A stretch of 64,000 nucleotides of DNA, taken from positions 54,994,001 to 55,058,000 of the forward strand of contig JBITNC010000001.1 of assembly GCA_050084985.1 (NCBI GenBank). The letters run 5' to 3'. Positions within the stretch are counted from its first letter, which is position 1. Each line of letters starts with the position of its first letter. This document shows positions 17,752 through 63,043 of this stretch, piece after piece. The position numbers and the translations under genes are program-made. Origin of the DNA: Nageia nagi (taxonomy: Eukaryota; Plantae; Pinophyta). The notes below the pieces were generated by a model. It was not told the origin of the DNA. It ran no database searches and worked only from the letters and a program-made list of their open reading frames with translations.

Positions 17752-18373
17752 TAGCCATGCAATCTAGACCAGCTACAACTTTCTCCTCTAATACTTCTAC
17801 ATTATCAGATGCAAAATCATCCAAACCTCATAAATAGGTGATTGTGCATTCTCCAGTATCTGGGTTGCAAAGAGTGTTCATTATTGCAATGTTAAGTTGC
17901 TCAGCCACTCAATATCTGACAAAATGCCTCCTCAATTTTTGCAAGATCTTCTGGCAGTGGTCCAATCTTAAATATTTAAGATTCATATTGTACCTGAAAA
18001 ATCTTTTGCTGATAGAAGACAACAAGAAACAAACATCACAACGCATGTACATATATTTCAACTAGCCATGCAATCTAGACCAGCTACAACTTTCTCCTCT
18101 AATACTTCTACATTATCAGATGCAAAATCATCCAAACCTCATAAATAGGTGATTGTGCATTCTCCAGTATCTGGGTTGCAAAGAGTGTTCATTATTGCAA
18201 TGTTAAGTTGCTCAGCCACTCAATATCTGACAAAATGCCTCCTCAATTTTTGCAAGATCTTCTGGCAGTGGTCCAATCTTAAATATTTAAGATTCATATT
18301 GTACCTGAAAAATCTTTTGCTGATAGAAGACAACAAGAAACAAACATCACAACGCATGTACATATATTTCAAC
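17752..18373. repeat. Apparently identical 311-bp tandem duplication covering the acceptor and start of the NADK2 large exon
   Basis: 17752-18062 equals 18063-18373 by eye, and the ORF-track translations over the shared part are identical. Confidence 0.95.
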
Positions 18374-18383
18374 TCAACAAAAA

Positions 18384-19450: not shown

Positions 19451-19955
19451 AAAATCATACGAAGTGGCCAAAGAGCAAAGGTACAAAAGAATGCACATAA
19501 TCTATCATCATTAATGATCTTAAAACTTGGTGCACAAAACCTATTAAGGTAAACAGAGTATGTTCGTTGTTATCCTGTTCAGGTTCGAAATAAAAATGTA
19601 ATATTATTGTTCAAAGTACGAATTCAAGTTACTTGGGTATGAAACGATTACAGTTAGCATTAATGAGGCACAACTAGTGAAATGTGAATCTCACACAGTT
19701 TGAATCAAATCAGGTTTACGTAGTTAATCAAGGGCTGTGTATACAGGAACACCTTGAGAATCAGAATAGATTATGCCAAAACGTAACCTATCGAAGATTC
19801 AGAACTCTTACAAGCATTTATAGATTAGAACAATGCACCAAAGATGAACTATATATCCTAAAGGAATTTTTTCAAGAATGAAACGATACCCAAAATTCTT
19901 TTCACATTCCCAATGAGATTTATATTATTTTAGGAATGAAATGATCAATACCCAC

Positions 19956-29230: not shown

Positions 29231-29720
29231 GGAGTGGGCTATCCTCCTCCAAATTTAGCTGTAAATGCTCATAATTAATGGTATTTATTTTGGGCATTTA
29301 TGTGTGCTGCTTTACCACTTGATCATGCCACTTTAGCATTTAAACCTAGATATTTATGCATTGTTAGACACCCGTATGTTTCCCAATTATGCCGCTCCAT
29401 TGGGTTAATTAAAATTCATTTATAAAAGCTAAACATAGTTCGATTAACCTAACAATCCTAAATTTTAGGTTTTTATGTTTTCTTAACTTAATTTTGGGCA
29501 TTTATGTGAGGTTAATCAAAATTTGTTTATTTAAGTTTAATTGAACTTGGTTTATATAGATTAAATAGAGTTCGATTAACCTAATGTATTAATTGAAAAA
29601 GTAATATTTGTGGTCATGTATTGCATATGCTTGAAGGATTGTTGGGTTAATCAAACTCTATTTAACCCTTATAAATGAAGTTTGATTAACCCAATTTGAA
29701 CAATAAATATTTTTAACCAA
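29231..29720 (+). repeat. Left long terminal inverted repeat
   Basis: GGCTATCCTCCTCCAAATTTAGCTGTAAATGC..TTAATGGTATTTATTTTGGGCATTTAT is the reverse complement of the sequence ending at ~63037. Similarity continues in blocks for ~400-480 bp. Confidence 0.85.
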
Positions 29721-30239
29721 CCAGTCAACACAACACCCAATTAAATCAATTCAATCTTTGTTTAATCATAAGAATTTATCCTTTTGTATAATGAAATTTA
29801 AAATCTTCATCAACCAACCTATGTATACCCATTCAATTTGCTTCTTTGTTTTTAGATATCGACCTCTAAGCTTTTTTGTTGCAGAAGATCAACTCTCTCA
29901 GCTCCTCTAGGTACAATTTTTTCCCATAATGTATCTTGTCAAATAATTTTGTATGCCTTATATTTTTCCTCTATATTTTCATGCATCTCTTACTAGATTA
30001 ATTTTTGCATGCATGTTTTGGTAGATTCATCTTTAGATGCAGGTCTTGCTATATTAAGTTTTGCATGCATGTCTTACTAGATACATTTTTCAATGCATGC
30101 CTTTTTATTTAAAAATAAAAATAAAAAAGAAAAAATGTTAATATAGAGAGTACCCATCCTATTTATCAAGCTAAATGTAAGGTTTTTTGATAGAATTATG
30201 CAAATAAAAAAGTTTTAGGAATTCAATAAATCCTACCTT

Positions 30240-31085
30240 GAAAGAAATTATTATCCTTCCCATATTAATGTCAAGGTTCATCATACATTATCGGACTTCA
30301 TGGAATATTATCGAGTTTCATTGTTATTTGTTGGGATTCCTCATACATTTTTGGCCTTCATGGCATATTATTAGGCTTCCTCATTCATTTTCAGGCATCC
30401 TTTCTATACCAATGAATTTTATACCCTAAAATTAGTCCATTCCATGAATCTATATCTAGATCATGCATCTTGTTAAACATTTCCCTAGATATATGTATTC
30501 TTACACATTTTGCATATGCACATGATAATTGCATCTACTTAAAAGTCTCTAGAGCCTTTTGAGAAAATCTATTTTGTTAAAATCTTGAAAATAATTGCAT
30601 TCCATGATATCGTGTCTACATGATTCATTATTTTCATGCATTTTTGGCCTTAATGGACCATTACAAGTTTCAAGGTACAATGTCAAGCATCCTCTTCTCT
30701 TTTTGGGCATCATCTCCCATTATCGAGCTTCAAGGTACAATGTTGGGCTTCCTCTTTTATTGTTGAGAATCATCTCCTATTATCAGGCTTCATGGTATAA
30801 TGTCAAGCATCCTCTTATATTGTTAGACATCATCTCATATTGTCGGTCACCCTCATACATTGTCAATCATTCTCTTAAATTATCGTGCATTCTCTTCCAA
30901 TTTCAAGCATCATCTTCTATTATCAAGCTTCATGCCAGATTGTCGAGCTTCATCATGGGTTATCAAGATTCATACATGGATATCAAGGCATTCAATACCA
31001 TAACATCCATGCTAGAATAATGGTGTCTTTAGTTGTAGAGTTTGGCTTCATGTATCATAATTGCATCTACTTGATAGGGTATCTG
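30240..31085 (-). other. PLS-class PPR gene fragments interleaved with 20/60-bp tandem repeats
   Basis: Minus strand reads VDTISWNAII..FSQKALETFK*MQL (~30530-30625) and FK*MQL*YMKPNSTT (~31030-31075). Confidence 0.7.
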
Positions 31086-31324: not shown

Positions 31325-33400
31325 GTACATAAAGAAGTTGATACATAATGACATTGAAATGGTATAGGATATTTAATCTACCTATCCAAGATATCCTTGT
31401 AAAATAAATCTTTTGCATAAAGATTTAACCTGGAGATCAATACGATGCTTGAGAGGATTAACAAATTCAATGACAACAATATCTTTATGCAAGTTAGATG
31501 ATTTCAAAAAGGGTGAAGAATGTAATCCTGATGCATAGTACACTTTTTTGTGTGAGAAAAAAATACATCTGGTTAGAAAGGTAATTACAAGTCAAAGGAA
31601 ATTAGACATGACATGTATGTAACTATGTTTAATTCCAATTTGTGCATTGCATGATTATATTTTTCAAAGAAATACTATTCTAAACTTTCTATTTTTTATG
31701 TAGTTATTGGTGTACTTACGGTGATAAGGATAAGCGAGATGACCCTCCTCCTTCAATTCAAAAGAGGCACAATATTGAGAAAAGAGGTTTTCAATGTCAT
31801 TTTATTGTGAAGCTATACAAGAGTTTACTTAAAGTTGCATTTATAGTATACAATAAATTTGAACATGTTTCATTGGATGGCAAATCTTACCATGAAGTAT
31901 ATGATACAAGCAAAACAAGAAATGGAAGTGTTAATTTTGCTCCACGTGTGTTGAAAGAGACTTATTCCATGCTTGAGTCATTACTAATAGATGGTGTTTT
32001 TGTTGATGCAATTTGTAATGGGCAATTCTAAAATGAATATTTTGAAAATGTACCTACAGTATAAGACTTTTTCATTCTAAGGAAGGATGTTCAAAACATA
32101 TACAATAGATTGATTAGAGGAAAGGTACGAAAGGCTAAATATGATTCCATGAGTATTAATTATTGGTACCAATCCAATAAGGATAAGGTTTTCATATACA
32201 AGAACCCTAACCATGCCAAAAATAAATTCATTCTTGGTATTCAAACAAAATGGATATTGGAGAAGATGGTTGAATTATCCATAATAACATAATTTCAATG
32301 GATTCAACATTTAATACAAATTTTCATGGTGTAAGTATCTTAAAAATTTAATTTTTTAGCTACTTTTTATGTGCATTGCTAACTTTCTTATGTTTATTTT
32401 GATTCTAGTACCAATTTTACACATTACTTGTGTTTGATGCCCAAGAAAGTGGTCTACCAGATGCATGAGTTATCACATATAAAAATGGTGTTGATTACTT
32501 AGCTAAGTGACTACAAATATTGAAATAATGTTTTCTAGAACATCAACTAAATTGGAGTGTGAATGCATTTATGACTGATGATGTTGTTACATAAATTCAG
32601 GTCATCAAGTCTATGTATGTTGTTTATAATTATGCAAAATAAGTTGAAAGAATGTCATTTAATTTTTGATGACTCTTATTTTGTGTTTTTAATTTAAAAT
32701 ATTTTTTTTTATTACATCCATGTCAAGGAGAGTATTTGGTTGCAGGCATTTTTTGTGTTTATGGCATGTGAAACAATCTCAGTTAAATAATGCATACAAG
32801 AAGGTATCAATAAAAGATATTGAAAGAATTATGTTTTCAAGGTTAGATAAAATAACATAGAAATGTAAGGATGATGAGTATGTGAAAGTAGATATATCTA
32901 AGTTTTATATTAATTTCCATGAGGAGAAGTCTTATCTAAACTACTTATCTAAGAATTGGTTTTAGGGTGATAGAATTCATATGTTCACATATAACATGTT
33001 TATTCTTAATAATTTTTTAAATTGTTAAATATTTATCATATTGATTATAGTTTTTTTACTATAGGTATGTGGGCGAAATGCTACAAAAATATTCCACATT
33101 CCAACCAAGAAATAAATTCAGTTATAGAATCATATCATTATACTATGAAAACTAAGTTTTTATGTCATAATGCAAGAAAATATGCTAGAAGAATGGATAA
33201 ACTAGTTCAAAAGAATGGATAAACTAGTTCATGCTTTGTTGTTTTTGATTGAGTCATATTTTGTAAAGAGATGTAAATTGAAGATACTTGGTTTTTGGAA
33301 CAATTACAAGAAGGAGGAGTCTAGAAAGTTAATTATAGAGGTCTCACATGATACTTGATTATCATTATGTTCCTCATGAAGATGTAGTTGGTTAATAATG
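31325..33400 (+). pseudogene. MULE-family DDE transposase of the At4g13970/At1g60560 type; spliced and disrupted
   Basis: Motifs IFNLPIQD, YWCTYG, RGFQCHFIVK, FILGIQTKW, MDSTFNTN, YTLLVFD, FMTDD, FLCLWHVK and NSVIESYH. GT-AG introns at 31615-31703 and 32331-32408, and probably ~32610-32727 and ~32980-33065. Confidence 0.88.
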
Positions 33401-34470: not shown

Positions 34471-37360
34471 CCTATGGGCCTTAACCCTAAATAGTCGATG
34501 AAAGCCCATTTCCATAATCATGCACTTGTAATGTTTATTGAATATTTACTGGCTAAAAAATATTCCTTGCAATCAAAACCACAGTATTTGATGAAGCCTT
34601 GTTGGTGAAAAAGCTTATTTTTTTTATTGCATGATTTAAAGACCATTAAATTATATTTTTACAATAGCCATTTTTACAATACCTGAGGAAATAATGGGCA
34701 AGTTCCATATCCTTAATTTCTATGTTTCCTTTAATTTATTATTGACTATATTTATTTCTTATGGAGAATCCCCTATGATGATCAAGTCATCAACATAAAG
34801 GTAATTACTAGTATATGACCATTCCTTACTTCATAGTAGAGTTTAGATTCTGATCTGCATATCATGAAGCTTGAATTAGTGAAAAAAGTATCCTTGGCAT
34901 ACCATGCTCTTATATCCTACTCCAAACCCTATATTGACTTCATAAACTTACATATGTAGGTAATTATAATGTGAATGGGATTGGAACTAACATCTTTAAC
35001 ACATGATATAGATCTCTACATGGAGCTAACACTTGTTGGATGAGAAAAATGTTAAGAACAAAGGATTTTCCATATGCATTATGCTTATTGTTGAAGTCTC
35101 TATCTTGGCTTTTGAGGGAGATTGTATCGATAAAGAGAAACACTTTTTTTGTGAAAGAATTGAAGGTATTTGAGGCTAAAGGAGAAAAGATGGAGAAGCA
35201 TAATAATGTAATTCTCCCATTAAGAGACTTCTATATCTTCTCTCTTATCTTGAAAAACCTTAAATTCTTTGACAAGAGAGTATTTATCCCTATCGATACA
35301 TTCTCCTTGAAAGCTAAGTCAAAATTTTTATGAATGAGTGCAATGGATATAGTAAATTCTACTCCTTTGGACTCAACCTTTTTTGCTTTCCCAAGAGTTG
35401 AGTTAGCTCCATGGAGAGCTTTGTATCTATCCCACTAAATTTCTTCAATACACCAACATCAATGAAGTGATCTGAATGCATATTATCGTAAGCATAAATG
35501 TAGTGATCTTGGTGCTCAAACATTCTAATTGTTGCTCAAATATATCCATGTATGTTTGAAACTATTTTATCTTGATTGCATAGATATCCACAAATGGGTA
35601 AGAATGATGAACATTCATGTTATAGAAAGAGATCATCAAAACATATAAATTCTAATGTTGATAAAGATTGTGATCATTATAGTATGAAAGATTTACAATG
35701 GTTCCTAAACACAAACTACAATTATGTGTGAATGCTATGAGGAGAAGAAGGAGCAGTTACATATCATTGAAGGTCAATTGATGTCAACAAAAGAGGAAAT
35801 TAAAATATTTATGAAAGAGAGAGACAGGTTTAGATACCAGCTTACAAACATCTTAATCAAGTTTAAAGAACTTAAATATGAATTACTTCTTCAGGATGAT
35901 GAAAGAACTAAAACTAAAATAGTAAGAAGTTAGATGGGGTGTAGAAGCTTTTTAGTATGATAGATTTATTTCAATTCTATGTGCTATACATTATAATTCT
36001 CTTTCTTAAATTACCTTGAAAATGTTATGTGATGTACAGTACTTACAAAAATATATTAGGCAAAGTGATTATTAAAGATTATGATTTTTTGATACATTTA
36101 TGAATATTTAGTATTCATTCGGATATTTGTATAAATATTGGAAACACATATTTTGGATACATCCATGTATCAATATATGTCTCTAAATATTGTGGATACA
36201 TTTTCTATATATCTTGACATATTTTAAAAACATGTATTTTTGATATATCCATGTATGAATGCATATCTCTGAATGTTGTGGATACATTAACTATATATAT
36301 GGAAACTCTCGATTATATTTTTGAAGGTTCAATACAAACTTGGAATTTTGTTTAAGTAATTTTCATTTATTATGCCTTTTAATATGTGTTATATGGATAA
36401 CTTTGATATTGTTTCTAAATTTCTATCAAAAAGTCTTTGGATGTAACTGAAAAAATGAATATATTGATGACATATATGTATTTATTCTTGGTACTTTTCT
36501 ACATTTTGAAGTTAGCAATTAATGTATAATATTGACAACTACATAAAAAATGAAGTGCACTTAAGCAAGGGAACATAATTATTATGGGTGTTGAATGTTA
36601 TATGAAATATTATATTGATGATAATTACATCTAATTGAAAGTGTCTAGAGCATTTTTGAAAAAATCCATTTTATGAAATCCTTAAGATCATTATATTACA
36701 TGATACTGTGTATACATGATAGGTTATTTTCAAGTATTTTCAACCTTAATAGACCATTTTTAGGCTTTAAGATATAATGTCAAGCATCCTCTTCTATTTT
36801 CAAGCATCATCTCCATTATTGAGCTTTAGGGTACAATGTCGAGAAACCTCTTCTATTATTGGGAATCATCTCCCATTGTTGGCTTTTAGGGTACAATTTT
36901 AGGCTTCCTCTTATATTATTAGGCATCATTTCCCATTATTGAGCTTCAACATACAATTTTAAATATCCTCTTCTATTATTGGGCATCATCCCCCATTGTC
37001 AACATTCAGGATACAATGTTAGGCTTCCTCTTCCATTATCGGGCTTCACAGTATAATATCAGACATCCTCTTCTATTATAGGGCATCATATCTTATTTTT
37101 AGGATTCAAGTACAATGTTAGGCTTCCTCTTCTATTTTCAGGCATCATCTCCCATTGTCAAGCTTTAGGGTACAATGTTGGGCTTCCTCTTCTAATATCA
37201 TGCATCATATCCCATTTTTAGGCTTCAGGGTAAAATGTAAGGCTTCATCTTTTATTGTTGGACATCATATCCCATTGTTGAGCTTCATGGTATAATGTTG
37301 GGCTTCTTCTTCTATTATAGGGCATCATCTCCCATTTTCGAGCTTCATTTAGGGTACAAT

Positions 37361-40300
37361 TATTAGGATCCCACATCCTAACATTTTAGTGTTAGTATTA
37401 ATATTTTATTAAATGGTTGACCTATATTGTAAACCATAATATTATGATTGTAAGGGCGGGGCATAATTTTGCATTACTATTAGGGTTAGGGTTAGTTTAA
37501 TATAAATAGAGGGAAATGTGTGGAGAAAGGCATCTTGAACATTATTTTTCACCCTTGGAGTTATGAGGAGGTAGCCCCCTCGAAGTGACCTGTGATTCTA
37601 TTACTATTCAATAAAATCCTATCCTTATCTTCTATTTGATGCTATTTTGTGTTCTATTTACCAGTTTATGCTTTGTTATTTTCTAATAGATAGTTGTCAT
37701 TTTCCTATTCAAGTTAATATTTGTTTCATTTCTATAATATTTCCCTTTTTTCATAATTGTAGCATTGTAACATCTGGTATCAAAGCTCTTTCCTAGCCCA
37801 TTCTATTGTAGGAAAATAAAAATAAAAATTTAGAGGTCTAGGCTAGAAACCCTCTATTGAAGGATCTATCATTTTTGGCTAAGCACACTTGCCCATAAAG
37901 CTATGTGTGAAGTGAGGTGCAAAAAACTCTACAGCAATACCCAGGCCTTAGATAGAACCCTAAATGGAATTGGACTCCATGTACTGAAAAGTATATCAAA
38001 GACTATCTAGGTTATAAATGAAAACTAGGTAGGAAGTTATTTTGACCATCTGTAAACTATAGTGCACCAGTAAGTGCCATTGGAAAGTTACTTATCACAA
38101 AAGTCATCTTCACAACCTCTTGTGAAAGTTGGATAGGAGGGGTGTTTAGACAAGCCTACAGAGCAAATAATCCTTACTTAGACTCATTCCTTCACATAAA
38201 AAACCTTGATTTGAGAAGGAGAATTTATGATAGGTAATTTTTTAGAGCTACCAAAAATAACAGTTTAGAGGTAACAAAAACTTTAGAGCAAAATAACTAA
38301 AAATATATTCATTTCAGTAGTTTTTAACAAGAGCAAATAGATCCATAGATGTAAAAAAAAGAGTTTGAAGGTTCAAAAATCATCATCAAGAGACCTAGCC
38401 CATTGTGATCATCTTTTTGAGCTGATTATTTTGATATATTACACCCATACACTTTTTTGGGCATTTCTAAAAATAGCAATTTCTAAAAATAGCAGTTTCC
38501 AAAAATATCAGCTTCAAAAATAGCAATTTTTAGAAATGGCATCTGAAACAAGATCCCAAATAGTAGCATAAGCTGATCCTACCATGATGACATTTCAAAC
38601 TATGATCCAACAAATGGAAAATACACTCACCAGTACATTTAGAGTAGAAATTTGATAAATATACACACAAATTAAACCCTTAATAATAAATGTGATAGTG
38701 TTCAACTAAGTCTCAGTCATACCAATAATGCATCCAATTCATAGCAATCAAGGTAGTCAGAAAATCCATAAGGGTATCATCATAACTTTCAAAGCCAACA
38801 AGGTGGGTTCATTCTTCCTTACACAACCAAATTAGATTTTCCTCTATTTGATGGAGATAATCCCAATGATTGGATTTACAAAGCTGGATAGTATTTCACA
38901 TTAAACCAAATCCTAGAGGATTTGAAGGTGTGCATGGCATATTTTCACTTGGATCATGAGGCTCTCCAATGGCACCAGTGGTACTCCAAAATGCATCCTG
39001 CTCCTTCATGGGATGAATTCACTCAGCAATTATTGATTCATTTTGGTCCTAGTGACTATGAAGACTTCACAGGGACATTAACCAAGTTACGTCAAACTAC
39101 AATAGTCAAGGAATACCAAAATCAATTTGAGAAATTTGTAAATCACACAAAGGGGTTGGATGATGCATTTTTCACAAGTTATTTTATCAGTGGCTTAAAG
39201 GAAGAGATTAAATCCAAGGTCAAAATGTTTAATCCCAAAAATATAATGGATGCTATTACCTTGGCAAAGCTCATTGAAGATAAAGCCAGTGCTCATCATT
39301 GAAATGCAAGACCTCCATTCACAAAAACACATAATATTACCCATTCCTCTAATAACATAAGGACCCCACCATCAAATCACATAATGCAAATTATAAAGTT
39401 GACATGGGAAGAAATGGAAGAGCATCGAAAGAAAGGACTGTGCTATAATTATGATAAGAAATCTATTCATGGTCATCATTGTACACAAAAAAAGTTATAT
39501 TTGCTTGATGCTAATGCTCCTAGTGAGGAGGAATATGAGAGTGCATCTGAAGAGGCTATAGAGGAAATTCTAGATGAGGAGGCCCCAGTTATCTCTTACA
39601 ATGCATTGGCATGAATTACCACCCCTCAAACTATGAAGGTTAAAGGGTTCTTTAAAAAGCATCCTCTCATAATATTGTTGGATTTTGGAAGTACTCATAA
39701 TTTCATTGATCCATGAGTGGCTAAGGTTGCTAACTGTTACATCCACCCTACAAATAATTTTGAGGTTATGGTTATTAATGGAGGAAAAATAGCATGTAAA
39801 GGCACATGTCATAATGTCAAACTAAGCATGGACCACTATACTTTGAAAAGTGACATGTACGTTGTACCATTTGGGGATGTGATATAGTTTTGGGGGTACA
39901 ATGGTTGAGGACTTTGGGCATCGTATAGTGGAATTTTGTATAGCTATGGATGACCTTCAAAATAGATAAACAAGAGCATACTCTTAGGGGATTATAGGGT
40001 GGATCTATACAACTTGTGAGCTCACATTGCACGGAAAAGATCCTACAAAAAATTGGAAAAGAGATGCTAGCATAGTTATACTCTTTATCAATATCTAAAT
40101 CTAAAATCACAGAGCTTAAGGATCTGTAGACCATCTTAAGTAAGCATTCAAGTACCTTTGAGGAACCATGGGTATTACCACCTAAGTGATCACATGATCA
40201 TGCTATCCAGTTGGTGCCAAGAAGTCACCCACCAAACATTCATCCTTATCAGTATCCTTGTTTCCAAAAAAATGAAATTGAAAAATTGGTTAAGGAACTA

Positions 40301-43300
40301 TCGAATGCAAGAGTAATCTAACATAGCATAAGCCCATACTCTTCTCTAGTTATATTGGTTCATAAGAAAGATGGTTCCTGGCATATGTGTGTGGATTTTA
40401 GGGCCCTCAACAAAATTACCATCAAGGACAAATTTTCCATCATTGATGAATTATTGGATGAACTACATGGGGCAAGATATATTTCCAAACTGGACCTATG
40501 ATCTGGGTATCACCAAATCCACCTCAAGGAGGAGGATATACTAAAAATTGCATTTCGCACTCATGAGGGCCATTATGAGTTCCTAATTTTTCCTTTTGGC
40601 CTCATAAATGCTCCATCCATGTTTCAAAGTTTAATGAATTAGGTGTTTCATCCATTCTTTAGGAAATTCATTTTAGTTTTCTTTGATGATATCTTGATCT
40701 ATAGTAAGACATGGCAAGAACATATGACACATGTTGACCAAACCTTACAAATCTTGAAGGAACACTAGCTATATGCAAAAAAATCTAAATGTTCATTTGG
40801 CAAGAGGGAAATTAACTAATTAGGCTATGTTATATTGAAAGAGGGAGTTAAGATGGATCCATAAAAGATTAATGACATGTAGAATTGGTCTATTCCTACA
40901 TCTTTGAAAAGCCTTTGAGGATTCTTGGGGTTGATAGGCTATTATAGGAAATTTGTGAAGGATTATGGCAAGATTGCAGCACCTTTAACCATGTTGTTGA
41001 AAAAGAATGCGTTCCAATGGTTCCCTCAAGCTAAGACAACTTTCCTTAAGCTCAAGGAGGCGATGTGTACCACCTTGGTATTAGTAATGCCAAAATTTAC
41101 TAAAATTTTTGTGATAGAAAGTGATGCTTGTGGAGTAGAAATTGAGGCAATATTAATGTAGGAAGGGCATCCCTTAGCATTCACTAGTAGACCACTCTCT
41201 AGAAAAGATTTGGGTAAATCCACTTATGAAAAAGAAATGCTTGCCATCATTCATGCAGTTCAACATTGGAGACCATATCTCATTGGTCGCCATTTCATCA
41301 TCCTCACAGATCATCATAGTTTGAAAATTTTCATTGAGCAATGCATTTCTATGCTTGAGCAACAAAAATGGGTAACCAAACTATTGGGGTATGATTATGA
41401 GATAGTATACCATAAAGGTAAGGAGAATGTGGTTATTGATGCTTTATTTAGAAAATTTGAAGATTAAGTAGCACTACAAGCTCTTTTATCTCCTATTCCT
41501 CAATGGTTGGATAAAATTAAACAATAGTGGGTAGAGGATAGTTCCACCCAAGAATTGCTAAAATAGATCACTCAAGACCCCACAAGTAAACCACACCATA
41601 CATTACATGATGGTATTTTGAGATTCAAAGGTTGAATTTTGTTACCATCTACTTAAAAATGTAAATCAAAAATATTTGTCAAATTGCATTCCACACCTAC
41701 ATCAGGACATGAAGAATTTTTGAAAACTTATAAGCAAGTGGCACAGTCATTCTATTGGATAGGTATGAAATTGGATATCAAGTAGTTTGTGGCAGCTTGC
41801 GATGTGTGTCAATGACAAAAGGGTGAGACAATGGGTACTCTAGGAATCCTTCAACCTCTTTCCATACCTACCCATACATGGACCAATATCTCAATGGATT
41901 TCATTGAAGGCCTTCCTAAATCTCATGGTAAATCAATTATTCTAGTGGTGGTTGATTGGTTATCCAAATATGCTCATTTTGGTTCATTGGCTCATCCCTA
42001 TAAAGTAGTGATAGTGGCATAATTATTCTTGGATATAATTTTCAAACTACATGGCATGCCAAAAATGATTACTAGTGATCATGATCCCACTTTTACAAGT
42101 CATTTTTGACAAGAGCTTTTTAAACTACAAGGTACCCAACTAAACATGAGTTCAACATATCACTCACAAATTGATGGTCAAACAGAAATTATCAACAAAT
42201 GATTGGAAACATATTTATGTTATTTTGCTTCAGCATAACCTATGAATTGGGTATGATGGTTTCCCTTGGTTGAATGGTGGTATAATACATCTTATCATTC
42301 TACCAGTAAGATGAACCCTTATGAAGCAGTGTATGGTCAAGCTCCACCAATAATCACCTCGTAAGTTGTAGGTACTAGTAAAGTTCAAGCAATGGACTCA
42401 GCTTTAGTTACTTAGGATGATATTGTTTATTTACTCAAGGATAACCTTCAGGTAGCCCAACATTGTATGAAATAATAGGCTAATCAGCAAGATGTGGAAA
42501 GAGAGTTCCAGGTAGATGACATGGTCTTTCTGAGGTTGCAACCTTATCGCTAGAAATCCTTAAAAATAATAGGCCCTAAAAATTAGCCCCAAAGTTTTAT
42601 AGTCCTTACAGGGTGTTACAATGCATTGGCCCAGCTGCATACAAATTAGAGCTTCTTGCTTCTTCAAAGATTCATCTAGTGTTTCATGTCTTTTGCCTCA
42701 AGAAAGTGGTTGGATCAAAGGTTTGGGTTTAGAAATAATTACTTGAGTTAGTAGAGGATGGATCAATGGTAGTGGTACCTGAGGTAGTTCTAGATCAACA
42801 CTCATGATAGCTTCATAATCACTCCATCATAAAAGTCCTTGTGTAGTGGCAAGGCATGGCACCAGAAGATGCAACATGAGAAATCCTTCATCAGTTATAG
42901 CAATAATTTCCAAACTTCAAGCTTTGAGGATAAAGCTTCATCCTAAGAGGGGTGGCATGTTAGGATCCCACATCCTAACATTTTAATGTTAGTATTAGTA
43001 TTTTATTAAATGGTTGGCCTATATTGTAAATAATAATGTTGTGATCATAAGGGTGGGGCTTGATTTTGCATTACTATTAGGGTTAGGGTTAGTTTAATAT
43101 AAATAGAGAGAAATGTGTGGAGAAAGGCATCTTGAACATTATTTTTTTCCTTTGGATTTGTAAGGAGGTAGCCCCCTCAAATTGGCCTGTGATTCTATTA
43201 CTATTTAGTAAAATCCTATCCTTATCTGCTATTTGATGCTATTTCGTATTTTATTTAACAGTTCATGCTTTATTATTTTCTAATAGATAGTTATCATTTT

Positions 43301-43368
43301 CTTATTCAAGTCAATATTCGTTTCATTTCTGCAATATTTCTATTTTTCATAATTGTAGCAATGTAACA
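37361..43368 (+). mobile_element. Full-length degenerate Ty3/Gypsy chromovirus (Reina-like), 6008 bp
   Basis: LTRs 37361-37772 and 42958-43368 (~90% identical by manual count). TSD ACAAT at 37356-37360 and 43369-43373. PBS TGGTATCAAAGC at 37775-37786. PPT at ~42945-42957. Confidence 0.95.
38536..42927 (+). pseudogene. gag-PR-RT-RH-INT-chromodomain polyprotein with many stops
   Basis: PKLDFPLFDG, LLDFGSTHNFI, FFDDILIYS, ESDACG, TDHHSL, ISMDFIEGLP and a terminal VLV*WQGMAPEDAT* chromodomain. Confidence 0.93.
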
Positions 43369-44299
43369 ACAATATTGGGCTTCCTCTTCTATTATCAAGC
43401 ATCATATTGCAGTGTGAAGCTTCATTCAAGGTACAATATCGGGCTTCCTCTTATATTATTGGGCATCATCTCCCATTGTCAATCATCCTCATACATTTTT
43501 GGCCATCCTCATAAATGATCATGCATCCTCTTCCATTTTCAATCATCCTATTATATTATCTAGCTTTGATGCATATTTGGATTATACATAATTTGATTAA
43601 TTGTTATAAATGATGTTCGATTGACCATGCCATAAAAATGTAATTCAATTAACCTATCATAAACATAATTTGATTATTCATGTTATCCATAGTTTGATTA
43701 ACCCCCTTTCATAAATGAACTTTGATTAACCTATTGTTTTTGTTACAAAAAAATTACATTTCTTACGGTAAGCAATCTTTTGTGCAAAATTTGCTCTTAC
43801 AGCAAGAAAATGCAAAATTTTCAATTTTTTTGGATAATACGCAGCTCATTTATAATTGTTGGTGTTAAAAACAAAATTGCATTTCTTATTGTAAATTTGC
43901 TCAAAAATATTTTACTATAAATTTACCATATGTCAACAAACATAGGCACAAACATCATAAGACATATATAACAACATAAGACCTATATGATATGTAAAAC
44001 ATAATATTGCATATATATTCAAATATTTCATGTGAAGAAGAGTAATGTAAAGATCCCACAATTTTTTTCACTCGTAGTATCATAAATGTCATACAATCTA
44101 ATCACTTACTGACCAAAATCATAATCTTTATATAACTAACTCTATTGAATCACATAATATATACAATATACATAGATAGATCCAATACACCAAAAGACAT
44201 ACATATAAATACATAAAAGTTTATTATACTATAAAGGTCTATTCTTCTTGTTTCTTTTAATATTAATATTATCTTTAAACCACTTCTCTCTTTCTTTTC

Positions 44300-45162
44300 T
44301 ATCTATCCCATATGGATGAGTTCTTTTTACATTCAATGTTTCATTCATAGTTGGGTCCATCATATGATATCAATCTTAGTATAAACTACAACTAGTGCAT
44401 CATATGTGTGGATAGAGTTTCAGCTTTGGTCATATTTAAGTACACTTCCTGCAGTCATTTTGGTGTTAAAAATTTCAGAAAGTATTCTTTATAGGCTTGC
44501 TTACTTATGCATATTAGATTTTCATTATCATACAATTCTATGTTCATGTCAAATTTTATTATAAACCCTTTTGGAGAATCATCCTGCAAATGATACCCAT
44601 TGGTATAAATTACATAGTATACATCCTCTTCCACCAACAAAATAAAAAAATGTGCATCCCATTTAACTACATAAACACCTATTTGATCATTTTTTACAAA
44701 GCCTTCCCACATATCATCAAATGAACAAAGTTCATTTAGATATGAAAATTCTTCATCAACAAGTTTTGATTGGAACATGGAAAGATATTCAAATCCCATT
44801 AAGAGAGGTCAAAATTTCCTTTGTAACAAATCAAAAATCTCAATTGACCATTTGGGTAGTTTACTTTATAGTATTCTTTTTCACACATACCTATCCACTT
44901 CACTCTTCCATCCATTATAATCTCATCAAGTATTGCTTTGATGGTAACCTTCTTGGGTTTTGTATAACTAATCAATAATTCTTAACACCAACATACTATA
45001 GGTGCTTTCCCCATTAGCCCATTCATAGTTGTGATGGCCTATATGTACCTCAAAATATTTTTTGCAAAGTTTTGTACTTTTATCCTTGGACATGAATTAT
45101 TTTCAGATAAATCTACCACCTAGGGTAATGTTGGTTTTAAGAAGAATACCTACACCCTAGGC
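44300..45162 (-). pseudogene. Copy 1 of a domain homologous to the C-terminus of At3g11760/At5g04860-type proteins (putative Cys/His peptidase fold)
   Basis: FMSKDKSTKL..ANGESTYSMLVLRIID*L..LDEIIMDGRVKWIGMCE..SFDDMWE..YVVKWDAHFFILLVEEDVYYVI..IIKFD..KQAYKEYFLKFL. Acceptor CAG at 45163-45165. Confidence 0.75.
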
Positions 45163-45254
45163 CTGCATGGGACTATTAAAATATATCAATTATAGTCAAA
45201 CGTGGTAAGTAATTAAATCAATACATTAAAATTACTCTAAATTAAAATATATGA

Positions 45255-46400: not shown

Positions 46401-47819
46401 AAAAGGTGTATGTAGGACAACATCAATCTACATAAGTGTAATATACATAAATGTGTAATGTCACAAGATTAATAGGCATCAAGATCAAGCTATCTAACTT
46501 ACAATATTACTTATTTTCTTATTTCCTATAATAGGAACACTATTTATTATCATTATAATACATGGTTGCATGCTCACCTCATGTGTCAAGCTAAAAATAG
46601 GAAAAGAGTTTATCTCAGCAAAAGGTCAAGCATTCTCTACCAATGTATTGGCCTCACAAGCTATATACATGGAGCAAAATAAATGGAGTATAGAATAAGA
46701 ATGATATTTTCAATTTTGAAAAACATCACAATACTAAACATAAATGAGAATCACATGCTCATGTCGTCATGTGATGGACCCTATAGTAATGGATTTTCAT
46801 TGCTAGTGTGTCTCCCTTATGTAGCATTAGTATCTTCATTATCAAAATATCTAGACTTTGTAATTTGAATGATAGGTGATTCTATTAATTATTTCACTTC
46901 CTCCAATGATATAGGTAAAGGTGCACCATAAACATGGAATACATTAGTGCACTAGATATGAAAATAACTAAAAAAATCTAACAAACAAAAAATAATATGA
47001 GTACCTTTCTATGTTCATTTATCATATGTTACCTCCAATGAGCTTCTCTCTTTTCATGGGAATCATAGTTCATCATTTCTGCAAGAATATTTTCCCTAGT
47101 TTCCATTGATATGTATACTTTTGAAGTCACCTTCTCAATGATCATTGCAACCTTCACCAATATATTTTATTTAGAGTTATATTTGATGTGATAAACATTT
47201 GCAAGATTATGTTTTCTTTTGAAGTATTTTTCTTGGCTATATGTCAATGGTTTTAAGGTTGCTACCAACCTACCCCTCTTAATTTTTGGTATAGGTGGTA
47301 AACCTTGATGTTGGTACCTCCTATGGTTATTAAAGGTTGTACACAACCAAATTGGTATATGTGGGTAAAAATGATATGGATCAAGCTCACAGTAGTATCT
47401 CAACTTGCCATTCCTCCTGCTAGTATGCCATTCATCTTGTACACCATGTGCATAATCAGTTTCAATGTGTTACAAGTGAATGAGATCAAAACATAATAAG
47501 TACATTATTTACATAGGTAATTCCAACATTATTGCATAAATAAATGCAAAAATCAATACCAACCATTGCTAAGTTAAATATTGCCATCACAAGCTAAAGC
47601 ATTAATTGCAGCAACTAGAGGTTTTCTTCCACCTCCGCATTGTTAAAATACATTAGTCCACCAACATTGCATGTATAAGGATTCATATCAAGAATAATGT
47701 AATACAACTTGTATCCAAATTTGCAACCTACAACATCCTTCAAGCTCTTTAGAGAAGGTTGGATTTTATTTTCTTTTCAACTAAAGGGTGAGCTTGAAAA
47801 CAATTATTACTAATTTTAT

Positions 47820-55994: not shown

Positions 55995-57544
55995 AAATAA
56001 TAATCTTTTGTGGCTTTATAGTTTAATGTTTGGATGCATTAAATGCGATAACACTTAGCATCAATATGTGCAAATTGTGTCATTAAAGTCATTGATCCTT
56101 TGAATATAGACTTGAGTTGATTTACTTTTTGCCTTTAATTAATTAAATATTTATAATATTAGTGATACCTTCATCACTTTTAAAGCTCTTTAATGAAGTT
56201 GAATATCTTTTAAACTACCCAATTATGTTTAATGAAGCCTAATAATATGTCATGAAGCCTAAAGATGCATGATGAAGCATGATAATATGCCATGAAGGAT
56301 GATAATACTAAAGCTCAACAATCTTTCTTAAATCTTTACAATATGCCATGAAGCTCAAGGATGCATGAGGAAGCCCAAAAATCTACTATGAATCCTGATA
56401 ATGCATGATGAAGCTCAACAATATGCCATGAAGATCGATAATGTATGATGAAGATTGATAATCTACCATGAAGCTAGACACTATGCCATGAATCCCGATA
56501 ATGCATAAGGAAGCTCAACAATCTGCTATGAATCTCAATAATGCATTATGAAGCTTGATAATATGCCATGAAGCTTGATAATATACAAGGATGTTCGATA
56601 ATGTATGAGGATGCCGACAAGGTTCCTTGAAGACTGATAATGAATGCAAAAATGAATCTAGCAAGCATGTATGCACAAAAAAATGGGAAAATGTTCAACC
56701 AAGATGGATGATTTAGATATAGATTCATGTAAAGGTTGTAGAGAAACTTAAGCATGTATAATTATCATATGTAAAGCCAAACTCTACAACCATTTTCACT
56801 ACTCTTCTAGCATACAAATGATGTTGTGGTTTTGAATGCCTTGATAGCCACATATGCCAAATATATAAGAATTCATAAATCCTGAGGAAATGTTCAACCA
56901 AGATACATGATTCAATCATAGATTCATGGAATACAATGATTGTAGGATATGTAATTCATGACTACATAAAGGATTACACTAAAAATCTTTGGTATACATG
57001 ATGTAGACATAATATCATGGAAATGCAATGATCTTGAGAATATGCACAAAATAATTTTTCTAGATAAATATAAGTATGTAAAATTGTTAGATGCGAAGCC
57101 AAACTCTACAATCTTTGCCACTACTCTTCCAGCATTCAATCAATGTTATTATTTTGAATGCCCTAAAAATGTTCAATAAAATGCATGATGCAAACACAAA
57201 TTCATGGAATGTAAAGATTTTAGGATATGCAATTCATGGATTCCTCACACATTATCAAGCTTCCTCATGCATTATTGGGCTTCATGGTAGATTATCGAGC
57301 TTGATCATGCATTATTGGGCTTGCTTATGCATTTTCAATTATGCATGAAAGAGAGTTAAAAGTGGTGAAGGTATCAATAATGTTATAAAGGTTTAATTAA
57401 TTAAAGGCAAAAAGTAAATGAAGTTGACTCTTTAATCAAAGGATTAGTGACTTTAATAACATAATCTACACATATGGATGCTAAGTGATTCAACATTTAA
57501 TGGGTGTAAAGCTTTAACTTTAAACACACAAAAGATTATTATTT
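55995..57544. repeat. Fold-back structure: ~190-bp inverted arms enclosing 20-bp repeats and PPR fragments
   Basis: 55995-56190 is the reverse complement of 57350-57544 (TTTACTTTTTGCCTTTAATTAATTAAA vs TTTAATTAATTAAAGGCAAAAAGTAAA). The loop contains VKPNSTT-type and SWN motifs. Confidence 0.8.
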
Positions 57545-58635
57545 GGATTCAATAGCAGGTAACTATGCAAGAAAAAAAGATACATAAAGCCTAGGAAATA
57601 TTTAACAAGATGCATGATTAAGACATAGTTTCATGGAATGCAATGATTATAGGATATGCAATTTATGGCTTCATATTTTGACCATTGCACATACTAGAAT
57701 AATGCTGACAAGTGTTATAGAGTTTGGATTCACATCTAACAATTACATCTTTTTGAAACTCTATATACCATATCCATAAAATTGTGTCTACATCATGCAT
57801 AATGGCATCCTTTATAAAGCCATTAATTGCATTATTGGTACCCATAAAACCCTATATTGTAATGATTTATTTCCTTACAAATATTATATCAAAGAGTTTA
57901 AAGTATCATAATGATTGATTTCCATACATATCATTGCATTCAACATTATTGAATTTTTTTGATGTATTTTCTTTATGTATCTTGTAATCATTGCATGCTA
58001 GGAAATTACTAATGTTCAAATAAATGCAACCATAAAATTACAATAATGTTCATCACAAGTGCATCCAATATTCATAACAAAATTTAATAATGTTTACATG
58101 TCATTGTATTGCAAGTGTCCAACAAAGACATATACATGCAAAAAAATAGCATACACAATATTTACAAGATATATCAAATTACAAGTCTTGGAATCAATGT
58201 ATCATAAATAAAAATATTCAACAAACTACAAGCAACACTTCCATTTCCACCATATGAAACTATTGTAGAAGTATCCTCATTGGGTTATTCTCTTTTCCAT
58301 AGCCCCTTTTGCAATCAATGTACAAGATCCTATTTCCATTGTACAACCAAGTGAAACATTGGACTTATACCAAACTATTCTTTTTGTTTAATTGATTTTG
58401 ATAGCTGGAGGAGTTATCCCCAAGATAGGTATATATCTAGATCTAAGCCCTTCTTCATTCGTAGTGATCCTTTCTTATTCTTTGCTTTGTTTAGTATGTA
58501 ATTGCCTTGAATTGTATAAGTCTTATAACAACATTATTATGAAGAATACAATTCATATTGAAGAATATGAGTCATAAAAATCATTTACATGAACAACAAG
58601 ATTCATAATTGATCAAGAGTAAGATAAAGACCTAC

Positions 58636-59532
58636 CTATTTTCTATATCCTCACATGCTGTGAGAGAGAATTCAATGACCAAATGCTAAGTTAGTTGGAG
58701 GTCATTTATTATTCTAGCTTTCTATTCAATCAACCAATCCTACACACATTTCTTAGTTAGAAACATACTGAAGTATAATTTGCAACACTCCTTACCTCTA
58801 CATATTAGTTTATAGGGATTCTCAACATTTTGTCTTTTCCTTGTCCAACACTTCCATTTCTTGGTTAAATTTAAATATAATTGGTTTTTTGCAATCCTCA
58901 TGCTGGATATAACCAAGGGTATCAATAATATAACACACATTTTCTTTAACAACCATATTGAAGAAATGGTTAGCCCATGCAACTATGTAAATCCTTGGTG
59001 TATTTGATACTTCATCCCATATTTTTACAAATGTATTTTCCTCTTATATTTTGAATTTTACCAAGTTTCCCTTTGGATTAAGTACACCATGTTTGGATAT
59101 TGTAAATTCTACAGTTAGAGGAGTTATTGTATGATTTAAAACCAAGTCCAAATCAAATTGTCCATCTAGAATTTTTTTACTCAAAGATGGAATCAATTTC
59201 ATCATGTTCCATTCTTGTTTAATAAATTGGCCAAATTATTTTAGATTAGACAACAAAGTATGATTTGCATCCAACCAATTAGTGATGAGTACATAACAAA
59301 TTGAACAAGCACCTTCCTCATCAACACTATCACTTAGCTGGTCTATCAATGCACAAAATACATTTGTTAGAAGTCACTTTATCATATCTATACTGGTAAA
59401 TTCATGTTGATACCATCTGACCATACCAACTCCATGGTGATCACCATAATATTCCCCTATAGGTTTTTGTGCTCCCTCAGTATGCATGGGATAGATTGGA
59501 GGTTGGAATATGACAACATCACCCTCATTATC
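58636..59532 (-). pseudogene. Copy 2 of the At3g11760-like C-terminal domain, as one exon
   Basis: RWYQHEFTSID..TNVFCALIDQLSDSVDEEGACSICYVLITNWL..DGQFDLDLVL..PLTV..KIWDEV..YIVAWANHFFNMVVKENVCYYIDTLG..FKFN../ICRGKECCKLY..LVIEFSLT. A few stops and one frameshift. Acceptor at 59533-59534. Confidence 0.82.
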
Positions 59533-59769
59533 CTATTTTTATGCATATAACCTATTAGATTATATGAAATATTCTATGTAATGGACTATATTGTCTACTT
59601 ATAGATGAATAAGAATATATGTAATATAATATAAGATGAATTAAAGTTGAATATTCTAAGTAAATTTCATTTCTCACAATTTGAAAAGGATTATATCCTT
59701 TTAAAGTAAAAAAATATATTTACAAATTCATAATTTTATTATCTAACTACTACAAAATAAGATGCTCAC

Positions 59770-60420
59770 CTGCTCCTTTAACATTTTTACTTCTGATCCA
59801 TTTTCCTCATGCAATGTCCTTTATGTACCTTATTGTGACCATTTGGTTGTGTCTAGAACATATTGTTATGGGAACCATCCTCCTTGGTGACCATTTAGAC
59901 ATCCCTATTTGACCCTTCCATCCTTTGGCTACATAGGGGAACCTAATAAGTATTCAACATACAATACTAGGACCATCTTGGTTATCAATTTAGATTATTT
60001 GATTTTGACACATACAAATTAAATGGTTGAGAACCATTGATTTTAGCCCTTTGCAGTTCATATCACCTAGTATTTTACACCTAAAAGTTAACAAGCATTT
60101 TGCAATAAATTAGTCTCCCATATCATAAAACCCCCAACTACTTCTCCCATTGTAGTAGCATCTCCATCAGGTATGGGTAGCTCCTAATCATCCAACTCAA
60201 ATATCATCACTTGTATCAAAACATGTCCCTTTTTGATCATTTTGCCATGAAACTTATTAGTAGGATCATCATTGTGCACACTCCCATAACCCACTATTTG
60301 GCTATTAAGATGGAGAAGATGCACCTTTTGTCCCTTTTTAATGTCCTTTGTGTCAACCTCAAATAACCTTGTCCCTTTATTAATTGTTTTTATATGATTC
60401 AATCTTTATATTTTTTTCTT
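59770..60420 (-). pseudogene. Upstream exon with a Tnp1/En-Spm-type (DUF8039-like) beta domain
   Basis: VHLLHLNSQIVGYGSVHNDDPTNKFHGKMIKKGHVLIQV..ELPIPDGDATTMGEVVGGFMIW. The donor CAG|GTGAGC at 59770/59769 is phase-compatible with the 59532 exon if read as phase 0. Confidence 0.65.
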
Positions 60421-61189
60421 TCCTCTAGCTCATAATCTTCAAGGTCTTTTAAGATGTCATTATTTGCTATTTATAGAAAATTTTCATGTCTACAGACATT
60501 GTTCTACCAATACTATTCTTCCAATCAATCTATAACATTTACTATTATATTATGACTTAAGCACCTTATTTATATATTTTCTTTCAGCTAATATTTTTTA
60601 GATTGTACCTGGATGGCTTATAAATGCCATCAATTGGCCTCCTACCTCTTGGTAGATGAGGAACTAGTGGAGCACCTTTATGAAATAAACTCTTATGCTC
60701 ATTTAACCTTTGAATATCAACCTCTCATTTTGCATTGAAAAATGCACAATCACAAGAAAGTAAAATTATTATATCCTATTATGCTTCCTAATTGCTTCCC
60801 ATTCTCTTGAAACACCATCTATGTAAACCTCTTTATAGTCATGTACCCATTGCAACACTCTATATTCATCAACGATAAGTTGTAAGTGGTCTTGTACATT
60901 ATCCTGTAATGAACATTGCAAGTATCACTATTTTTATCAAGAGTTACAACAATACATTCAACATATATACATTTAGTGCACCCATAAAATAATAGAAAAT
61001 TAGATGTGTAGTATCTGGTACATACCATCCTTAGTTGAGATTTTTCAATAAAACACTTCAAACAACTAAGACCAATAGAGTCCCAATTAGTATCTAATAT
61101 TTATTTTAAGGTAGTTTATGATTCATGGAATTTGTATGGAATGCAATGATTGGAGGATATTAAATTCATGGCTAAAGTAAGGACATCTA

Positions 61190-61985
61190 AGAATGCATAA
61201 GGAATCCTAACATTTATTATGGAAGCTCAAAAATGTATGAGGATGCCCAACAATATACCATGAAGCTCGAAAAATATACCATGAATCCCTACAATGTACC
61301 ATGAAGCCTTATATTGTACCATGAAGCTTGATAATATTTCATGAAGGTTGACATTATAAGATGAGTCCTGATAATCATAAGTAAAGGCCTATAATCTCTT
61401 TCAAGGAATTAATGGAATGCATACAATATACATGAAATCCTTTGATTTGCATAATGCAAATACAATATCATGAAATTCAATGACCTTGAGGATATGCAAA
61501 AAATAAGTTTTATAAAAAGCATCTATACACTTTTAAGAAGATACAATTGTAAGATCCAAATCCAAACTCTGCAACCTTTTCCATCATTATTCCAGCATGT
61601 GCCATCATGGGAGCTCTATAAGAAGTTATGGACATTTGTCAAAGAGATGTTGTGAATGGTTTTGTATCATATGTTATCATTATGAATGCCCTAATAGGCA
61701 TGCATGAAAAATGAGGGAGAATACATAAAACCCAAGAATTATTTAATAATATGACTGATGCATACACATTCTGATGGAATGCAATGATGGGAGGATATGC
61801 ATGTTATGATGTAAACAAGTTTCATGGATTGTAATGTTCACATGATATGCCTTAAATGGATATGTTGAAAGGTTTGTGAATTATTTGACAAAATGCCTCA
61901 TTGAGATATAATCTCATGGACTATAATGATCCCAAGATATGCACTAAATGGGTTTTCTAAAAAGGCTATATAAACTTTTAAGATA
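61190..61985 (+). other. 20-bp repeat array followed by a decayed multi-motif PLS-PPR fragment
   Basis: PNSATFSIIIPACAIMGAL*EVMDICQ..NALIGMHEK*GRIHKTQELFNNM..WNAMMGGYA..ELFDKMPH*DIISWTIMIPRYALNGFSKKA. Confidence 0.85.
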
Positions 61986-62559
61986 TGAATAATGAGGATG
62001 CCCAAAAAGGATGCATTTAAAAATCAAACTCACTACAAGGGTTTTTTCAAGATTAAGAATAATTAAAATAATGAGGATAAATGAAAATGTTGTGGTTCTA
62101 AATGCAAATACATCAAGGATACCTTAAAAAATTAAGAAAATATGTCTAAACTACAAGCAAGGATGCCCTTCATAAATATACTCGCTATAAGGGTTTTAAG
62201 AATATAAAGAACAAATAAAACTATAGCGACATCAATGAATGTAAATATTGTGATAAACTAACACCACAATGATGCTTGAACTACAAAGCAAGGATATCCT
62301 TGAAAAATATACTCAATACAAATAAGGGGTTTTTGAACATGAAGAAAGAAATAAAACAACATTTTTTACAAGCAACAAGGGTTTTTTGAATATGAATAAG
62401 GAAATAAAATAACAATTTTTACAAGAAATGAGGGTTTTTTTTCCACATACCAAGGGGTGTTTACTGCATGTTAGGGTCCTTGTACTGGTCGAGAGATCCT
62501 CATATTGGAAAAGTCAAAGGGAAATAATTAATCAATCAAGTTTTGTAGTGATGGGGGTT

Positions 62560-63043
62560 TCTTTGATTAACTTGTGTTAATATGATTATTATAAAGGATA
62601 AATAATAATTATTAAATAAAAATTCAATCTACCAATTAAATTGGATGCAATGTTAGTTGGTTGGTAAACATTTATGAGGGTTAATTGAACTTCATTTATG
62701 CAAGTTAAACAAATTTTGGTTAACTCAAAAATATTGCATGTATGATAAATGCCCAAGATTTAAAAAAAAACATAAACACCCAAAGTTAAGGATTGTTGGG
62801 TTAATTGAACTCTATTTAGATTTTATAAATGAATTTTGATTAAATCTATGGAGCAACATAATTAGGAGATGCTGAAAATGCATAAATACCCAGGTTTAAA
62901 TATTTCATAAATGCTTAGGTTTAAATTAGAGGAGTGGGACAATCAAATAATGAAGTGGAGGAGCAAAGGCTATAAATGTCCAAAATAAATACCATTAAAT
63001 CTATGCATTTATAACCAAATTTGAAGGAAGAATAGCCTATCGC
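62560..63043 (-). repeat. Right long terminal inverted repeat
   Basis: ATAAATGTCCAAAATAAATACCATTAAATCTATGCATTTATAACCAAATTTGAAGGAAGAATAGCC ending at 63037 pairs with 29237 onward. Confidence 0.85.

Follow-up and report, generated by a model that had tools for sequence, protein, structure and literature searches.

A decayed DUC-type deubiquitinase gene lacking the C2 domain, associated with a dispersed DNA-transposon-like repeat in a conifer-type genome

Background

The DUCs are plant-specific, membrane-tethered, K63-specific deubiquitinases with a papain fold, and the structures nearest to them are the VTD enzymes of transposons and herpesviruses (bioRxiv 10.64898/2025.12.04.692294). The family includes AtDUC1 (At2g25460), AtDUC2 (At3g11760) and AtDUC3 (At5g04860), the C-terminal domains of which react with Ub-PA and are selective for K63-linked di-ubiquitin; in the crystal, AtDUC1 adopts a papain-like structure, in which a Phe gatekeeper follows the His of a Cys-His-Asp triad. 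The same preprint handles DUC and VTD as separate families and states that all land-plant DUCs bear an N-terminal C2 domain. VTDs occur on Helitron/Helentron transposons and in herpesvirus tegument proteins; the family spread via Helitrons and is reported absent from plants (PMC9741609). Another protease domain found on transposons is Ulp1 (C48), a SUMO protease which, according to work cited in PMC13317346 and PMC2528002, is carried by Kaonashi/KI-MULE and CACTA elements of Arabidopsis, melon, rice and grapevine.

Here we describe a DUC-type catalytic domain in a stretch of 64,000 nucleotides, hereafter the window, in which it is found as a decayed pseudo-exon (copy 1) and as a second, more decayed copy. 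Compared with AtDUC1-3 and PpDUC, copy 1 is homologous over the full length of the catalytic domain and has the same motifs and the same order of Cys, His-Phe and Asp; a papain-like fold is predicted for the family. Copy 1 differs from them in several respects: it lacks the N-terminal C2 domain and linker and has another upstream domain, it is multi-copy and embedded in repeats whereas they are low-copy host genes, and it is broken by stops and a frameshift, with about 30-33% identity to land-plant DUCs. Copy 1 also differs from the VTDs (PDB 8ADD, 8ADC and 2J7Q; PMC9741609). There is no detectable sequence similarity between VTD and DUC, and the active-site residues of VTDs are Cys-Asp-His (in the order Cys-Asp-x-His) with no gatekeeper, whereas those of copy 1 are Cys..His-Phe..Asp. 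Also, VTDs lie inside the Helentron RepHel ORF, whereas the deubiquitinase (DUB) of copy 1 is a separate gene beside repeat arrays.

The pseudo-exon and its catalytic motifs

The coordinates of all features are presented in Table 1. Copy 1 comprises about 294 codons, spans the whole At3g11760-type C-terminal domain and contains six in-frame stops and one frameshift, based on the minus-strand translation and homology. The preliminary description had placed a decayed exon of about 290 codons at 58636-59532, and this is borne out. Frame A (59532..58825) consists of four open pieces with stops at 59374-59376, 59236-59238 and 59044-59046, and is closed by a stop at 58822-58824. A frameshift is located near 58811-58838, and the homology resumes in frame B (58838..58650), which spans the CRGKECC and (L)QIEF-type C-terminal motifs and helix and has stops at 58740-58742, 58722-58724 and 58686-58688. 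The two motif groups that had been pointed out, IDQ..EGAC and then YIVAWANHFF..YYIDTLG, occur in that order in pieces 2 (IDQ..EEGAC) and 4 (YIVAWANHFF and YIIDTLG) of frame A. A candidate last exon at 58540-58584 was rejected because the C-terminal helix was found at 58835-58656 in the shifted frame; a C-terminal truncation which seemed common to the non-canonical copies was rejected on the same ground.

In copy 1 the codons aligned to the catalytic Cys, His-Phe and Asp of DUCs are all intact, as is the Gln codon of the IDQ motif. By analogy with papain-fold enzymes, the Gln of the IDQ motif would be the oxyanion-hole residue. The reading frame is broken around the triad and therefore, judging from the translation, copy 1 cannot yield an enzyme. 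An AG lies directly 5' of 59532 on the coding strand; this may be a splice acceptor, and copy 1 is therefore possibly an internal exon.

Table 1. Positions in the window of the DUB copies, catalytic codons, repeats and neighbouring features
Feature	Position	Strand	Basis and remarks
Copy 1, complete DUC-type deubiquitinase domain in a single decayed pseudo-exon	58650..59532	-	Frame translation and homology
Gln of the IDQ motif, CAG codon	59338..59340	-	Alignment; 11 residues before the Cys
Catalytic Cys-aligned TGT codon	59305..59307	-	Alignment; GESAC motif in DUC, EEGAC in copy 1
Catalytic His and aromatic gatekeeper Phe, CAT TTC codons	58963..58968	-	Alignment; WNDHFF in DUC, WANHFF in copy 1
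Catalytic Asp-aligned GAT codon	58921..58923	-	Alignment; YYIIDTLG in DUC, CYIIDTLG in copy 1
Second copy, more decayed, one frame, many stops	44389..45180	-	Homology
Candidate upstream exon, about 105 codons	60091..60405	-	One stop (60184-60186); domain also upstream in L001
Array D, subterminal-type repeats of 20-bp units	55995..57781		Internal inverted pair 55995-56289 / 57248-57544; contains the abundant ~80-bp motif 57580-57660
Array E, repeat family of array D, directly 5' of the gene	61136..61983		Repeat comparison; inverted relative to the array at 30236-30861
Inner inverted-repeat arm, 3' side of the gene	57684..57781		98 nt, 72% complementary to 61508-61605
Inner inverted-repeat arm, 5' side of the gene	61508..61605		Partner of 57684-57781
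Left degenerate long terminal inverted block	29237..30629		Colinear with 63037..61448, about 70-74% identity
Right degenerate long terminal inverted block	61448..63037		Pairing with 29237-30629
Decayed transposase-like remnant, convergent with the DUB gene	31325..33400	+	Atlas neighbours

Homology to the DUC family and predicted fold

A search of 1.84 billion proteins with a two-sequence profile made from pieces of the window gave 158 matching proteins at E<=1e-3. Most of these are proteins of 550-750 residues in which the matched part lies near the C-terminus and the Pfam NT-C2 domain at the N-terminus; in the same collection the canonical C2-bearing members of the family match at about 1e-16. 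All pieces of copy 1 are colinear with the canonical domain. For HMM scoring copy 1 was read through with an X placed at every break, the other searches being given open pieces only. Scored in this way against a local HMM of canonical domains, copy 1 reaches E=1.3e-35, the match covering positions 11-209 and, in the shifted frame, 240-299. A Cryptomeria family member used as a tblastn query finds the window copy at 3.5e-25. At the level of sequence, the match of copy 1 to the DUC domain is far above chance. The proposed relationship to the At3g11760-type C-terminal domain is confirmed by both the profile and the HMM; the description of that domain as orphan and uncharacterised is superseded, the family having been named DUC in a preprint of December 2025 (bioRxiv 10.64898/2025.12.04.692294).

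Concerning the domain databases, Pfam has no model for the DUC catalytic domain, either for the window pieces or for the canonical matches, and it assigns no family to any piece of copy 1, the second copy, the upstream exons, the transposase-like region or L001 (a third copy, see below). A search of PDB sequences with the window profile returned a single, chance match to a 14-3-3 protein. When a broad DUB alignment was used as the protein query, the results were dominated by canonical DUCs. The two-sequence profile also matched 6-17 repeated stretches in each of three giant, bacterial-looking proteins, P0037 (4891 aa, JGI), P0125 and P0149, with E down to 6e-13. These were rejected as homologues and taken as spurious repeat matches, the canonical DUB HMM having no match in them; the likeness of such giant surface proteins with beta-repeats to the YYVID..G...KFD core is probably due to chance.

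The fold was modelled with AlphaFold on P0019, a canonical homologue which contains only the DUB domain (pLDDT 84.9, a value for this homologue and not for copy 1). The top ranks of a Foldseek search with this model are 8ADC, 2J7Q, 8ADB, 8ADD and 1UKF; the fold of the canonical homologue thus matches VTD, M48 and AvrPphB. From the Q..C..H..D pattern the preliminary description had predicted a papain-fold deubiquitinase of the VTD type. The enzyme class was right, as both the published DUCs and the Foldseek result for P0019 indicate, and was already in the literature in 2025; the VTD type is not retained, the order of the active-site residues being different.

Further copies of the non-canonical type

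The second copy of the window lies 14 kb from copy 1 on the same strand and contains an open piece of 117 codons (44458-44808). Its core is 37% identical to that of copy 1, and at this protein identity synonymous sites are saturated between the two. Among its catalytic residues the Cys and the Asp are both replaced by Tyr, while His-Phe is kept. A third, independent long copy was reached via one fragment on a JGI metagenome contig of 4.7 kb with a GC content of 29% (L001); its DUB is also broken and has Tyr in place of the Cys. The complete domain, and not a part of it, is present in all three long copies.

In protein collections the non-canonical type is represented by P0001, P0003, P0009, P0072, P0106, P0133, P0145, P0126 and two more sequences, all of them short open fragments (53-116 residues). 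A protein search with a profile of the non-canonical copies only gave seven short fragments. No intact copy of the non-canonical type was found at all, the open pieces being 53-117 residues long; all the copies seen are thus dead, and they come solely from conifer-like data. Catalytic residues are repeatedly replaced by Tyr across the second copy, L001, P0001, P0009 and P0133: the Cys in two copies, the His in three fragments and the Asp in one. One C-to-T or G-to-A transition is enough to turn Cys or His into Tyr, the kind of change expected in methylated, silenced repeats, whereas a change of Asp to Tyr needs a transversion.

Missing C2 domain and the upstream domain

The NT-C2 domain, which Pfam recognises in the canonical proteins, is absent here: an NT-C2 HMM, for which canonical members have a median score of 173 bits, has no match in any frame of the whole 64 kb, in agreement with the preliminary description, and no C2 or linker remnant of the host DUC type is found in the window. 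Of the canonical HMM score, the DUB domain of copy 1 retains 30% and that of the second copy 17%, and therefore an equally decayed C2 domain should remain visible.

Instead, copy 1 is preceded by a candidate exon which looks like a small beta-rich domain of about 100 residues. No homologue of this upstream domain was found in Pfam, the ESM Atlas or a word-index protein search, and an earlier 'DUF8039/Tnp1-like' label was dropped, Pfam giving no family. The same domain is present in L001 at positions 231-461, on the same strand and with similar spacing before the DUB exon; this match has a score of 12 bits, against at most 2.2 bits in 300 shuffles of L001. A search of sequencing runs with the window stretch gave small word shares only, with no RNA run among the matches.

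Two further observations concern this region. In each of three DNA runs one contig joins 59906 to 60277, with 370 bp missing and ends which are not splice-like; these contigs represent members of the family in which a deletion has taken away part of the upstream-domain exon. Also, a short ..G.P..P...RGR motif, AT-hook-like, is located on the minus strand 1-2 kb upstream of both DUB copies (60587-60724 and 47269-47334; tblastn E 0.002), and this may be a further shared exon or a chance likeness.

Unusual architectures are also seen among the proteins with a DUC domain. P0005 of Cryptomeria japonica (XP_057856916.2, 949 aa) has a canonical-type DUC domain together with coiled-coil repeats and WRC (Pfam E 2.7e-11) and no NT-C2, which contradicts the universal C2 claim of the preprint unless the gene model is a fusion artefact. 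P0055 (975 aa) contains NT-C2 and a methyl-CpG-binding domain (E 1.2e-14) beside the DUC domain, and the start of P0070 (681 aa) resembles the catalytic domain of a receptor kinase (GKGGFGKVYKG); both may be real fusions or gene-model errors.

Copy number and repeat context

Four DNA runs, from three studies and with four organism codes, supplied contigs which match the window at 80% likeness or more. No bin of 56300-62200 is without such contigs, and 10-72 distinct contigs per run overlap the listed sites in the DUB exon and the upstream exon, these being measures of presence and of distinct contigs and not of true copy number or expression. The summed contig depth over the gene is similar to that over the non-coding flanks. 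The gene therefore belongs to a dispersed repeat and is not a single-copy pseudogene. Within the arrays, 57580-57660 and 61422-61618 are about 100 times deeper than their surroundings in the four runs, and 57580 and 57660 are the exact end points of hundreds of contigs; the former looks like a very high-copy unit of about 80 bp, MITE-like or satellite-like.

The repeat family of arrays D and E is also found in L001, 0.7 kb downstream of the DUB, where it is 77% identical over 175 bp to 61663-61489 (E 2e-33); its matches to array D have the same relative orientation as in the window. The order of upstream domain, DUB exon and repeat array is thus common to the window and L001. An ordinary host pseudogene, that is, a decayed duplicate of a host DUC which merely lies among transposons, is hard to reconcile with this shared upstream domain and downstream repeat, with the dozens of different contigs which each of the four runs has per site, with a second copy 14 kb away and with the lack of any C2 or linker remnant. 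Conifers do have several DUC paralogues, one of them with a non-C2 N-terminus (P0005), and no target-site duplication or clear termini bind the gene to an element, yet we consider this explanation highly improbable.

On a larger scale, the gene is enclosed by the two long inverted blocks of Table 1, which contain about 1.4 kb of inverted sequence and are 72% identical over their outermost 296 bp (E 7e-39). With these long inverted repeats the 33.8 kb from 29237 to 63037 are a candidate for one element, the unity of which is uncertain, as the block contains a nested LTR retrotransposon and further arrays. Neither a target-site duplication (9-11 bp) nor sharp termini were found at 29237/63037 or 55995/57544; the elements are old, and the duplication may have been lost by decay. 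The Atlas neighbours of the remnant at 31325..33400 are FAR1, DBD_Tnp_Mut and ZSWIM3_N at 0.81-0.87, which is a lead only; Pfam recognises no transposase in any piece of 31.3-33.4 kb, and Rfam finds nothing over 28-64 kb.

The nested LTR retrotransposon (37363-43368) has LTRs of 410 bp (37363-37772 / 42960-43368) which are 90% identical, as well as gag and RT-RNaseH-like ORFs at 38892-41464, and it splits an array of 20-bp units (36600-37360 / 43369-43570). Other contents of the window are LINE-like ORFs of the endonuclease and reverse-transcriptase type in the GC-richer left part (6690-9530, minus strand), an assembly gap of 100 N at 15756-15855, and young tandem duplications (315 bp at 99.7%, 17749-18063 / 18060-18374; units of about 820 bp at 91%, 18366-19455).

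Within 29237-63037 the arrangement resembles that of MuDR (mudrA/mudrB), with two convergent genes pointing inward from long inverted ends: the transposase-like remnant at 31.3-33.4 kb (plus strand) and the DUB gene at 61.1-58.65 kb (minus strand). It differs from MuDR in that the transposase is only a candidate, there is no 9-bp target-site duplication, and the block contains nested insertions and extra arrays. The preliminary description had proposed the gene as transposon-borne cargo of a MULE. Multi-copy status, the order shared with L001 and the inverted arms speak for a transposon, and carriage of the gene by a dispersed DNA-transposon-like repeat is well supported; with no target-site duplication and no Pfam transposase, MULE identity is a hypothesis. 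We know of no report of a DUC-type domain as MULE cargo. The likeness to Kaonashi/KI-MULE and CACTA elements would be that a cysteine protease which acts on ubiquitin-like modifiers and comes from the host is carried as an additional gene by a plant DNA transposon and amplified with it, whereas the protease (DUC and ubiquitin vs Ulp1 and SUMO), the protease clan and the plant group are all different and the MULE identity is hypothetical here. Some points weigh against reading the locus as an element: the arrays are so dense in the window that adjacency there means little, the contigs are short so that no single record links the gene and the termini, and nearly all non-genic DNA is repeated in a conifer genome.

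Past constraint and origin of the lineage

Nine non-canonical sequences are most alike at the columns which the canonical DUCs conserve (Spearman -0.53, p 7e-6, in the well-aligned core), and the same gradient is seen over the whole domain in the three long copies. Where the canonical family is conserved, the non-canonical copies also have derived states in common (WND to WD, EGC to ED- and Q to K). These sequence patterns and the conserved second domain suggest that the copies arose once and then evolved for a time under constraint; separate captures on several occasions, or less accurate alignment of the variable columns, could produce the same column-conservation signal.

FastTree/LG trees place the copies on very long and compositionally odd branches outside the whole set of 139 canonical members, including those from green algae. 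After a PMSF tree and AU tests, this basal position was taken as probable long-branch attraction. In the site-heterogeneous (PMSF) quick tree, copy 1 groups with two conifer DUCs, P0005 (Cryptomeria) and P0054 (SH-aLRT 86), and the second copy joins L001 (support 97). Compared with the free tree, the likelihood rises by 8.4 when the three long copies are constrained to P0005/P0054 (p-AU 0.78) and by 1.1 when they are constrained to the algal side (p-AU 0.53); the AU test rejects neither of the two. The conifer placement scores best, not significantly, and favours capture from the host.

A further explanation is that the copies represent an ancient transposon lineage, sister to or the source of the host DUCs; in that case the host DUCs would derive from a transposon gene which was domesticated and joined to C2, domestication of this kind having been proposed for some VTDs. 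Besides the LG/FastTree position and the p-AU of the algal-side placement, this would agree with the spread of the structurally closest family, VTD, through Helitrons (PMC9741609). The basal position, however, depends on the long, odd branches of pseudogenes, and under the site-heterogeneous model the conifer placement is better by some 7 log units. C2-bearing DUCs are already present in Chloropicon, Spirogloea and Mesotaenium, and therefore capture from a seed-plant host gene is more economical; the non-canonical copies were found only in conifer-like data, which also speaks against an ancient lineage. By our own estimate, an identity of about 32% to all land-plant DUCs fits a host-like ancestor and the neutral decay implied by six stops. 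We regard an ancient lineage, and with it the suggestion that such elements were the source of the host gene family, as very unlikely.

The conifer placement (SH-aLRT 86, and the gain of 8.4 when constrained) is equally what passive transduplication would give, in which the final large exon of a DUC gene of a conifer host was taken up by a Pack-type DNA element or a Helitron and amplified as junk, at no time of use to the element. Copy 1 starts at an apparent exon boundary, all copies are dead, and gene-fragment capture by plant DNA elements is common (PMC13317346). This explanation is rather unlikely in our view, as it accounts less well for a complete domain in all three long copies or for a second conserved upstream coding domain linked to the DUB in two diverged copies; the retention of functionally conserved columns and the shared derived residues point to constraint after the sequence left the host gene.

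Proposed gene and its significance

Based on the above, copy 1 is likely to be a dead gene copy which was carried and amplified by a dispersed DNA-transposon-like repeat family in a conifer-type genome. The ancestral gene would have had at least two parts: the upstream domain of about 100 residues and, about 0.5 kb downstream, a single exon with the complete DUC domain, including the Cys-His-Asp triad and the Phe gatekeeper after the His, with no N-terminal C2 anchor. Judged by its homologues AtDUC1-3 and PpDUC, the intact product would cleave ubiquitin isopeptide bonds, probably in K63 chains, and with no C2 domain it would not be tethered to the plasma membrane. The element could have benefited from the removal of ubiquitin marks which limit transposition or from stabilisation of its own proteins; the anti-host effector role raised in the preliminary description is likewise hypothetical. 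The gene may have originated by capture from a conifer host DUC gene, with later decay.

In relation to the published DUC family, what is new is a C2-less, two-domain gene which was amplified with a repeat in conifer-type genomes and is now decayed. The value of the finding is limited: not one living copy was seen, and the superfamily of the element is a matter of hypothesis. On the preferred reading, DUC would be the third type of ubiquitin or ubiquitin-like protease on transposons, after Ulp1 (plant MULE/CACTA) and VTD (Helentrons), and copy 1 the first transposon-borne member of the DUC/VTD/YopT structural cluster in plants. If the copies were instead an ancient lineage, DUC, like its structural cousin VTD, would have travelled on DNA transposons before host domestication and fusion to C2. 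The copies provide a concrete sequence set for asking why transposons keep recruiting ubiquitin-type proteases, and they point to a second life of the DUC catalytic domain, with no C2 domain, beside another conserved domain and spread by a DNA-transposon-like repeat.
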